A stretch of 64,000 nt of DNA from Octopus bimaculoides (lineage: Eukaryota), in contig NC_068988.1 of NCBI RefSeq assembly GCF_001194135.2, positions 56,541,076 through 56,605,075 of the forward strand. Reading direction: 5' to 3'. Below are positions 44,130 to 45,582 of the stretch, in pieces; positions within the stretch are counted from its first letter, which is position 1; every line of letters begins with the position of its first letter. A program made the translations under genes and the position numbers. The notes beneath the pieces were generated by a model, which was given only the letters and a program-made list of their open reading frames with translations, made no database searches and had not been told where the DNA came from.

Positions 44130-45582
44130 ATATCCTTTGAATATCAATATTCGCTTTGAATGCATGGTGCAATGACTGCTCTGGTATGCATGGGGAGGAC
44201 AATATATATGTGCATATTGGTATGAGCTGAGTGTTGGTGCGGCCCTGTCTCACTTCTCACTCCAAAATTGGGATTGCTTAACCATGTTTGGGGTCATCTG
44301 ACTTACCATGTGTTTTGTTGTTATGAGGGTGGGTTAAAATTTCATCTCAAAGTATGTTCCCAGATGAACAAAGACCATTGGCTTTACAGTTTGAGTAACA
44401 AGTCATTGGTTGGACTCGAGAACCATCTCAGAAGTCACCAGCAAGTAAATGCTTACTAAGAAATGATTGTCAATATCTAGGAAGTAGCCATATTCAGACA
44501 CCCACCGTATGTGTGAGTGTGTGTGTGTATACATGGATGGATAGGCACGCGCACACATGTAGAGGCATGTGGCTCAGTGGTTAGGGTGTTGGATTCATGA
44601 TTGGAAGCTTGTGGTCTCAATTCCTGGACCGAGCGATGCATTGTCTTCTTGAGCAAAGCACTTCATTTCACATTGCTCCAATCCACTCAGCCGGCAAAAA
44701 TGAGTAATCCTGCGATGGACCAGTGTCCTGTCTAAGTGGGGAATATGCCACAGAAACCAATAAACTGGCCCTTGTGAGTTTGTATGACTTGAGCAAGAAA
44801 CTTCAACTTGTTTTTTAATGTGCACACGTGTGTATCATCATCATCATCATCATCATTTTAATGTTCACTTTTCCATGCTTCTTAGCAGCATTTGAACTCA
44901 GAACATAAAACCAGAAGATATACCACTAAGCATTTAGTTTGGCATGTTAACAATTCTCCCAACTTGCCATCTATCTAATATCAATAATAATCCTTTCTAC
45001 TAATTGGGACAAGGCCTAAAATTTTTATGGGAGGGAGCAAGAGCAGAGGCCAGATATGGGCTAGTGCTCAACTGGTATTTATTTTATCAACCCCCAAAAA
45101 ATGAAAAGCAAAGTCAACCTTAGCAGAATTTGAACTCAGAACATAAAGCTGGGAGAAAATGCCTTTAAATATTTTGTCTGGGATGCTAATGATTCTGCCA
45201 GCTTGCCGTCTTGGGCACAAAAATAATGATAATGATGATGATGATGATGATGATGATGATGATGATGATGATGATGATGATGATGATAGTGAATGTTACA
45301 AGTATTTTTCAGGAGGATATGAAGTTGAAATAAAATCAGTCATGGTAATGAAGCGAGAATGAGACATTGTCAGTGAGGGAGATCTTTACCAATCAAGCAG
45401 GTGGCTTTGAGCCAAAGCAAGTTTCTTACTCTGCCACTTAGACTCTTGTTAGTTTCTTGGTTGTTCTTTTGTTTGTAGAGATAAAAATAGATTATAATAA
45501 TGGAAGTTGTCTGGGATGAGAGAGAAAAAAAAAGAAAGAATGATAAATAAACAAATGGTTTTGTTTCTTTAACTGTCATTAC
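44130..45582 (+). other. U12-type (minor spliceosome) AT-AC intron of KIFAP3
   Basis: 5' end ATATCCTTT (44130-44138) equals the U12 consensus RTATCCTTT. Branch site TTCTTTAAC at 45565-45573, terminal AC at 45581-45582. Splicing gives ATT A|GT GAA CTA in frame into conserved KAP3 sequence. Confidence 0.93.
44565..44800 (+). mobile_element. tRNA-headed SINE-like family E
   Basis: GGCATGTGGCTCAGTGGTTAGGGTGTTGGATTCATGA...TCAATTCCTGGACC (A/B-box-like) followed by a non-tRNA body. Related copies at ~26470-26660 and ~41930-42260; 3' modules in tandem at ~52830-53210(-). Confidence 0.7.

Follow-up and report, generated by a model that had tools for sequence, protein, structure and literature searches.

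KIFAP3 is among the genes for which MIDB catalogues minor introns in mammals. Mouse Kifap3 carries two of them on the + strand, at chr1:163815950-163817832 and 163865538-163868700, and human KIFAP3 (ENST00000361580) likewise carries two on the - strand, at chr1:170031985-170034371 and 169972599-169978084 (Olthof 2019, PMC6717393). The MIDB ortholog table gives the 5' splice site CTG/ATATCCTTT (here and below, a slash marks an exon-intron boundary) and the branch site CAATCCTTAACT for mouse Kifap3, while the human KIFAP3 row describes the other intron, with CAC/GTATCCTTT and the branch site GTTTCTTTAACC (PMC6717393). Introns of the AT-AC subtype make up about 22-24% of the minor introns of mouse and human (PMC6717393), or about 26% of those of human (PMC10639083), and the original prediction for the DNA analysed here overstated their rarity in calling them a small minority even among U12 introns. 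A survey which covered Octopus sinensis among others notes that minor introns are relatively numerous in molluscs (PMC10639083).

The AT-AC intron and its host gene

The window, that is, the whole stretch of 64,000 nucleotides of Octopus bimaculoides DNA that was analysed, contains a KAP3/KIFAP3 gene on the + strand which extends from about 35.6 kb to beyond 62.4 kb. A tblastn comparison of the window with a human KIFAP3 sequence, used as a lead only, places at least 12 collinear + strand exons between 35599 and 62368, covering residues 11-284 and 342-661 of the human query. Exons for residues of about 285-341 are not convincingly found in the window by this search, and two assembly gaps (46607-47094 and 48828-49404) fall in the interval concerned. 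Every mapped exon lies in an open frame, and the visible boundaries show ordinary AG and GT signals except at two introns of U12 type. Full-length relatives from Menidia, Hydra, Macrostomum and Cichlidogyrus bear the name kinesin-associated protein 3 in the sources.

The first of these U12-type introns separates an upstream exon at 43902-44129 (+ strand), which is preceded by TTTTTTGCAG/ and ends in the first base (A) of a split Ser codon, from a downstream exon at 45583-45684 (+ strand), which encodes (S)ELEKEEKIRAKEEYDKSVKKFESVVKKQEQLLR and runs into an ordinary G/GTTTGT donor. The upstream exon shows 57-83% identity to the orthologous exons of six related loci with full alignment, and the downstream exon is 76% identical to its ortholog in one of the animal loci described below (L001). 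When joined, the two exons give 110 residues that match the Pfam family PF05804 (kinesin-associated protein, KAP; cut-off 25.6 bits) with E = 6.3e-43 over model positions 163-267 of 708. The word-indexed collection searched has no junction-spanning protein or transcript of the same or a near-identical species; its matches are exon read-through ORFs of other animals, the best match being 73% identical.

The 1453 nt between the exons (44130-45582, + strand, phase 1) are very probably a bona fide U12-dependent AT-AC intron of KAP3/KIFAP3. Direct reading of the window gives an upstream exon end of AGA AAC ATT A/ at 44129 followed by ATATCCTTTGAATATC from 44130, and an acceptor side of GTTTCTTTAACTGTCATTAC/GTGAACTAGAAAAAG with the exon resuming at 45583. 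The 5' splice site ATATCCTTT (44130-44138, + strand), or TTA/ATATCCTTT with three exonic bases, is an exact match to the AT-AC U12 consensus against which it was compared, /ATATCCTT(T), and the 12-mer TTAATATCCTTT at this donor is identical to the MIDB 5' splice site of Slc9a6/SLC9A6 and Slc9a8/SLC9A8 (scores 96.7 and 98.2). The branch-site sequence TTCTTTAAC occupies 45565-45573 (+ strand), where 45572 (or 45571) is the presumed branch A, 10 nt before the last intron base; the yardstick applied for U12 type was TCCTTRAC at about 10-20 nt from the 3' end, with an optimum of 11-13. Its core TCTTTAAC departs from TCCTTAAC by one C-to-T change, a variant which also occurs in catalogued minor introns, and the 12-mer GTTTCTTTAACT is the Gmfb/GMFB branch site in MIDB (score 87.1). 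The terminal AC (TTAC/, 45581-45582, + strand) is the first AC 3' of the branch site, and a polypyrimidine tract is absent between branch site and 3' splice site, where the sequence reads TTTAAC TGTCATTAC/G. The junction 44129^45583 is in frame in phase 1, and its split codon A+GT gives AGT (Ser). The donor, the branch site 10 nt from a terminal AC and the in-frame junction of the original prediction can thus all be read in the window.

The intron has 39% G+C and a length that is no multiple of 3, and its interior consists mostly of dispersed repeat copies and a trinucleotide microsatellite, with nothing conserved. When searched against Rfam at gathering thresholds, the window matches no family, with neither an snRNA in the window nor a structured RNA in the intron. 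The presence of the minor-spliceosome machinery is suggested by the two intact U12-type introns together with the literature, and the AT-AC intron would presumably depend on it. In the splicing pathway expected from established knowledge of U12 introns, the U11/U12 di-snRNP would recognise ATATCCTTT and TTCTTTAAC jointly, after which U11 at the 5' splice site would be replaced by U6atac, pairing with the ATATCC donor. The bulged branch-site A would then attack, and its proximity to the branch site would select the first AC 10-11 nt downstream for 3' splicing.

The intron site in mammals and other animals

The AT-AC intron of the window resembles minor intron 1 of mouse and human KIFAP3 in gene, codon position, phase 1, AT-AC subtype and donor core ATATCCTTT. 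The MIDB sequence CTG/ATATCC equals the GCT G/ATATCC of two of the animal loci (L003 and L005), i.e., it marks the KKKKA/V site, and the mention in the original prediction of a U12 intron at about this position in vertebrate KIFAP3 is therefore right; its position is in fact exact, as seen in the mouse MIDB entry CTG/ATATCCTTT and in the vertebrate locus L005. The suggested comparison with MIDB orthologs likewise returns the same AT-AC intron for mouse Kifap3. The differences concern the branch site (TCTTTAAC in the window, TCCTTAAC in mouse Kifap3), the junction codon (Ser from A+GT in the window, Val from G+TT in L005) and the length, which is 1453 nt in the window as opposed to 1883 nt in mouse and 2387 nt in human, where the MIDB coordinate pair is taken as the AT-AC intron by gene order and strand, not by sequence. 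Compared with U12 AT-AC introns in general (e.g., those of SLC9A6, SLC9A8, HSBP1, PHB2 and SCN8A in MIDB Table S2), the intron is a typical member without any difference of substance, and the distance from its branch site to the 3' end is close to the cited optimum of 11-13 nt. On these sequence comparisons, its positional ortholog is the first of the two minor introns catalogued for mouse and human KIFAP3, and it would accordingly represent an ancient intron retained in this lineage rather than a lineage-specific device. An AT-AC intron in KIFAP3 is already known in kind, long conserved and ordinary.

The DNA of seven further loci (L001-L007), all of them animal contigs in metagenome or run assemblies found via exon read-through ORFs, was fetched for comparison. 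An AT-AC intron at the same codon and in phase 1 is present in L001, L002, L003 and L005. Their donor and acceptor sides read AGC ATG T/ATATCCTTTTT and TTTTTCTTAACCCATTTTAC/CT GAA ATG in L001 (2022 nt, Ser via T+CT), AGA GCA A/ATATCCTTTTT and TTCCTTGACAGATGTGTAC/CA GAA in L002 (168 nt), AAA GCT G/ATATCCTTTTT and TTTCCTTAACCTTACTTAC/CT GAC in L003 (3022 nt), and AAA GCT G/ATATCCTTTTG and GCCTTAACTTCTGCAATTTAC/TT GAT GAA GAT CCT in L005 (475 nt), where the joined exons encode KKKKA-V-DEDPENQ. L005 comes from a vertebrate-like genome, its exons are 89-94% identical to the human query sequence, and its reading AAA GCT G/ATATCCTTTT ... GCCTTAACTTCTGCAATTTAC/TT GAT GAA aligns with ATT A/ATATCC...TTAC/GT GAA in the window. 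The branch sites of the orthologous loci (TTCTTAAC, TTCCTTGAC, TTCCTTAAC or GCCTTAAC) lie 10-14 nt from the AC. Where the junction codon is Ser, it is drawn from different codon families, A+GT in the window and T+CT in L001.

The remaining loci differ in the type of intron found at the site. L006 has a U12-type GT-AG intron, TCC T/GTATCCTTTGT ... TTCCTTGACGTCCTCTACAG/CT, with a GTATCCTTT donor and a TTCCTTGAC branch site, L004 has a U2-type GT-AG intron of 122 nt, GCA G/GTTTGT ... TTCATCGCTCAG/CT, and in L007 the intron is absent. One ancient intron site is thus seen across animal genomes as U12 AT-AC, as U12 GT-AG, as U2 GT-AG and without intron, and these states fit the textbook course in which an intron switches subtype, is converted and is lost. 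Among the 167 related database proteins retrieved, 72 are read-through ORFs extending as far as the end of the exon. The tripeptide [D/N/Y/H]-I-L, which corresponds to x/ATATCCTN, stands at the exon end in 40 of these 72, and the GTATCCTN equivalent in two; by a rough estimate from residue frequencies, chance would place the exon-end tripeptide in fewer than one of the 72.

A second U12-type intron of KIFAP3, missing from the original prediction, lies further downstream at 60041-62282 (+ strand). It is of the GT-AG subtype and in phase 1, as read from its motifs. At 60040 the exon ends in ATT AAA CAA ACT C and the intron opens with GTATCCTTTTAC; its branch site TTCTTTAAC occupies 62262-62270, and the acceptor TGAAATTTACAG/AA GCA CCA has its AG at 62281-62282, with C+AA restoring Gln; an assembly gap (60770-61485) falls inside the intron. 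It is conserved in L002, where ACC C/GTATCCTGTGG ... TAATCCTTGACCTGCACACAG/AA is found. With CTC/GTATCCTTT and the branch site CTTTCTTTAACT, it is the counterpart of human minor intron 2 (CAC/GTATCCTTT, GTTTCTTTAACC), and like KIFAP3 minor intron 2 of human and mouse it interrupts the IIK(E/Q)T/ codon in phase 1. Since both introns match MIDB entries, the gene in the window has the same minor-intron pair as mammalian KIFAP3.

Intron retention and a proposed regulatory switch

Read-through of the AT-AC donor gives AAT ATC CTT TGA, and the in-frame TGA at 44138-44140 (+ strand, intron positions +9 to +11) is found exactly where the original prediction had located it. Truncation on retention is likewise predicted to precede the bulk of KAP3, at about residue 248 in human numbering. 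If the intron were not removed, translation would meet a premature stop after three codons, far upstream of later junctions, and the frame would be shifted. Nuclear decay or NMD would be expected to remove the retained transcript, leaving no useful protein. Any retained copy of this repeat-filled intron of 1453 nt would in any case end translation early and shift the frame.

The further claim that the donor itself encodes the stop holds for the presence of the TGA but not for a designed or conserved feature. Of the stop codon which overlaps the donor, only the T (+9) belongs to the consensus and the GA is free sequence. A donor ATATCCTTT in phase 1 leads to a fourth codon of the form Tnn, which is estimated to be a stop in about 1/5 of cases at the given base composition. 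L001, L002, L003 and L005, the four loci with an orthologous AT-AC intron, have other bases after ATATCCTT, and retention would there run into a first stop 15, 20, 23 and 16 codons into the intron. The immediate in-frame TGA is therefore confined to the window when compared with the catalogued KIFAP3 intron and its orthologs, and a special role for it is rejected because none of the four orthologous AT-AC loci has it. To judge from these alignments, it is an incidental, chance feature of the window sequence.

A rival reading is that slow or conditional minor splicing, combined with the immediate stop, acts as a cephalopod throttle on KAP3 and hence on kinesin-2/IFT supply, as the original prediction proposed. 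U12 splicing can reportedly be rate-limiting, U6atac levels are said to gate the expression of minor-intron genes, and minor introns have been described as molecular switches. In the switch model that goes under the name of Younis, any gene with a U12 intron, KIFAP3 included, would be a potential target of U6atac-limited splicing; the model is general, however, and its tie to octopus KIFAP3 is speculation. That two U12 introns are kept in KIFAP3 from invertebrates to mammals would fit such a throttle, as would the retention of U12 introns in KIFAP3 and other cilia-related genes upon DDX59 knockout, as described in a 2025 paper (PMC12095793). Yet the published tables that list minor introns retained or alternatively spliced in normal tissues of mouse and human do not include KIFAP3 (Olthof 2019, PMC6717393). 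The same AT-AC intron also occurs in vertebrates and several other animals, leaving nothing specific to cephalopods, and the TGA is not conserved. Moreover, the intron has become one of U2 type in some lineages (L004) and has been lost in others (L007), which implies that dependence on the minor spliceosome at this site is dispensable for KAP3. A cephalopod switch on KAP3 is therefore regarded as improbable. DDX59 knockout is the only condition under which the KIFAP3 U12 intron is reported to be retained.

A bolder form of this reading would have the two serial U12 introns reflect selection for minor-spliceosome-limited output of the cilia/IFT motor adaptor, the stop after three codons possibly yielding an N-terminal KAP3 fragment of ~250 residues with a regulatory or dominant-negative effect. 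Such a fragment, if real, would lack most of the protein, and the retained transcript would have to escape decay, and we consider this very improbable. Transcripts that retain the KIFAP3 intron would more plausibly be lost than translated.

Alternative junctions and gene models

The U12 motifs are not by themselves exceptional in the window. In comparison with shuffled sequence, ATATCCTT is seen 4 times (3.2 expected) and TCYTTRAC 16 times (10.1 expected), both near chance level, and the count of RTATCCTY is also near chance. Motif presence alone thus proves nothing, and the case rests on position, frame and conservation. What lies beyond chance is the configuration, in which the donor stands exactly at the conserved exon end and 10 nt separate the branch motif from an AC that is in frame and marks exactly where the next conserved exon begins. 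Calculated from the counts expected on shuffling, the probability of this configuration is roughly 2.5e-5 times about 8e-4, which comes to about 2e-8 for each junction.

All GT-AG, GC-AG and AT-AC pairs around the junction that keep an open frame were enumerated. No in-frame GT-AG or GC-AG pair keeps the conserved exon ends. The last in-frame GT donor, at 44074, would delete 19 residues, the majority of them conserved in all relatives, so that no conventional junction can replace 44129^45583. For the donor at 44130 three in-frame ACs are available (45573, 45582 and 45588), and those at 45573 and 45588 give the peptides MSLRELEKEE and IEKEE, which resemble the orthologs (S-E-M/L-E-K) less closely than does SELEKEE from 45582. 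The predicted mRNA junction 44129^45583, which would be the one used, has indirect support from an in-frame join that restores conserved KAP3, from the lack of a GT-AG alternative and from four other genomes.

Two further readings would deny the intron its U12 character. Rare AT-AC introns are said to be removed by the major (U2-type) spliceosome, and AT-AC termini alone do not separate the two classes (PMC6717393). Such U2-dependent introns share the termini but lack an ATATCC donor and a TCCTTAAC branch site, whereas the intron in the window has a perfect ATATCCTTT donor and a TCTTTAAC branch site whose distance of 10 nt from the 3' end is typical of U12 introns, without a polypyrimidine tract. 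Its 12-mers are scored as minor in MIDB, and one lineage has a U12-type GT-AG intron (GTATCCTTT ... TTCCTTGAC) at the site, which makes removal by the major spliceosome extremely unlikely. There is equally little to recommend a coincidence of motifs, with the true transcript on other GT-AG sites or the locus a decayed copy: each 8-mer occurs singly at chance frequency and some exons are missing in assembly gaps, but the improbable joint configuration is repeated in four other genomes, no in-frame GT/GC-AG pair preserves the exon ends, and the frames of all mapped exons are open and their splice signals normal.

With a U12-dependent AT-AC intron as the preferred reading, the main value of the locus lies in annotation: a correct KIFAP3 model needs both the AT-AC junction 44129^45583 and the U12-type GT-AG junction 60040^62283. 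The intron raises no new question on minor splicing or cephalopods. That predictors restricted to GT-AG sites mis-model AT-AC introns, as had been anticipated, is borne out by two public fish models which appear truncated or mangled at this junction by such prediction. In Alosa alosa, the 265 aa of model KAG5276268.1 finish with KKQKAY-ILLLEFVVKRQNNVSCS, a read-through of the AT-AC donor, and in the Oreochromis aureus Kifap3a entry 30 residues spanning the junction are deleted.

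States of the AT-AC intron site and their effect on public models

Judged from genomic DNA, the site of the phase 1 AT-AC intron of KIFAP3 (44130–45582, plus strand) is a single intron position that appears in four states across animal genomes, counting the AT-AC form itself. Three related loci hold the other states, namely a U2-type GT-AG intron of 122 nt at the orthologous site (L004, 10353–10474), a U12-type GT-AG intron carrying GTATCCTTT and TTCCTTGAC (L006, about 6362–7210), and no intron at all (L007, about 350–445). Two fish KIFAP3 models in public collections look mis-built at the AT-AC intron. 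The Alosa alosa protein (KAG5276268.1) ends in the read-through peptide KAY-ILLLEFVVKRQNNVSCS, and the Oreochromis aureus entry (UniRef100_A0AAZ1X0V7) is missing 30 residues across the AT-AC junction.

A second U12-type intron

KIFAP3 contains a second U12-type intron, of the GT-AG subtype, at 60041–62282 on the plus strand. Its donor reads ACT C directly followed by GTATCCTTTTAC, its branch site is TTCTTTAAC (62262–62270), and its acceptor TTTACAG ends at 62282; the intron is in phase 1 and splits a Gln codon (C+AA). Its counterpart in the KIFAP3 genes of human and mouse is the second minor intron listed in the MIDB catalogue, and a related animal locus (L002, 15976–16241) has kept the intron as well. 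An assembly gap (60770–61485) lies inside it.

Completeness of the gene model

The first mapped KIFAP3 exon lies at 35599–35733, and no exon for the initial ~10 residues was found in the window upstream of 35599. No convincing protein-coding exons were seen in the 5′ region (1–35500), which is rich in repeats and holds six assembly gaps. Between 45685 and 50570, an interval with two runs of N (46607–47094 and 48828–49404), residues of about 285–341 (human numbering) had no convincing match, and the model from the window is therefore incomplete. The sole match for these residues (48651–48731, E = 0.49) is probably spurious.

Repeats and gap borders

Much of the AT-AC intron is occupied by a dispersed repeat family of about 150–320 bp, which has at least 10 occurrences in the window, its copies being 70–80% identical to one another. 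One copy lies at 44880–45230, and further copies include those at about 2378–2530, 20307–20450, 25701–26070, 35924–36072, 36507–36674 and 55522–55670. A trinucleotide microsatellite is present at about 45225–45295, with related tracts near 10818–10863 and 12074–12115. A separate repeated element, recognized by similar ORF translations (e.g., ...AEFLQLDA..NHSES...RYWQRPRSNVF...), occurs at 8462–9149, 11184–11919 and 60345–60707, the last copy being held by the second U12-type intron. Inverted copies of this element stand on either side of the N gaps 8641–8886 and 11467–11599, and numerous tracts of (CA)n and (TA)n lie at the edges of the gaps.
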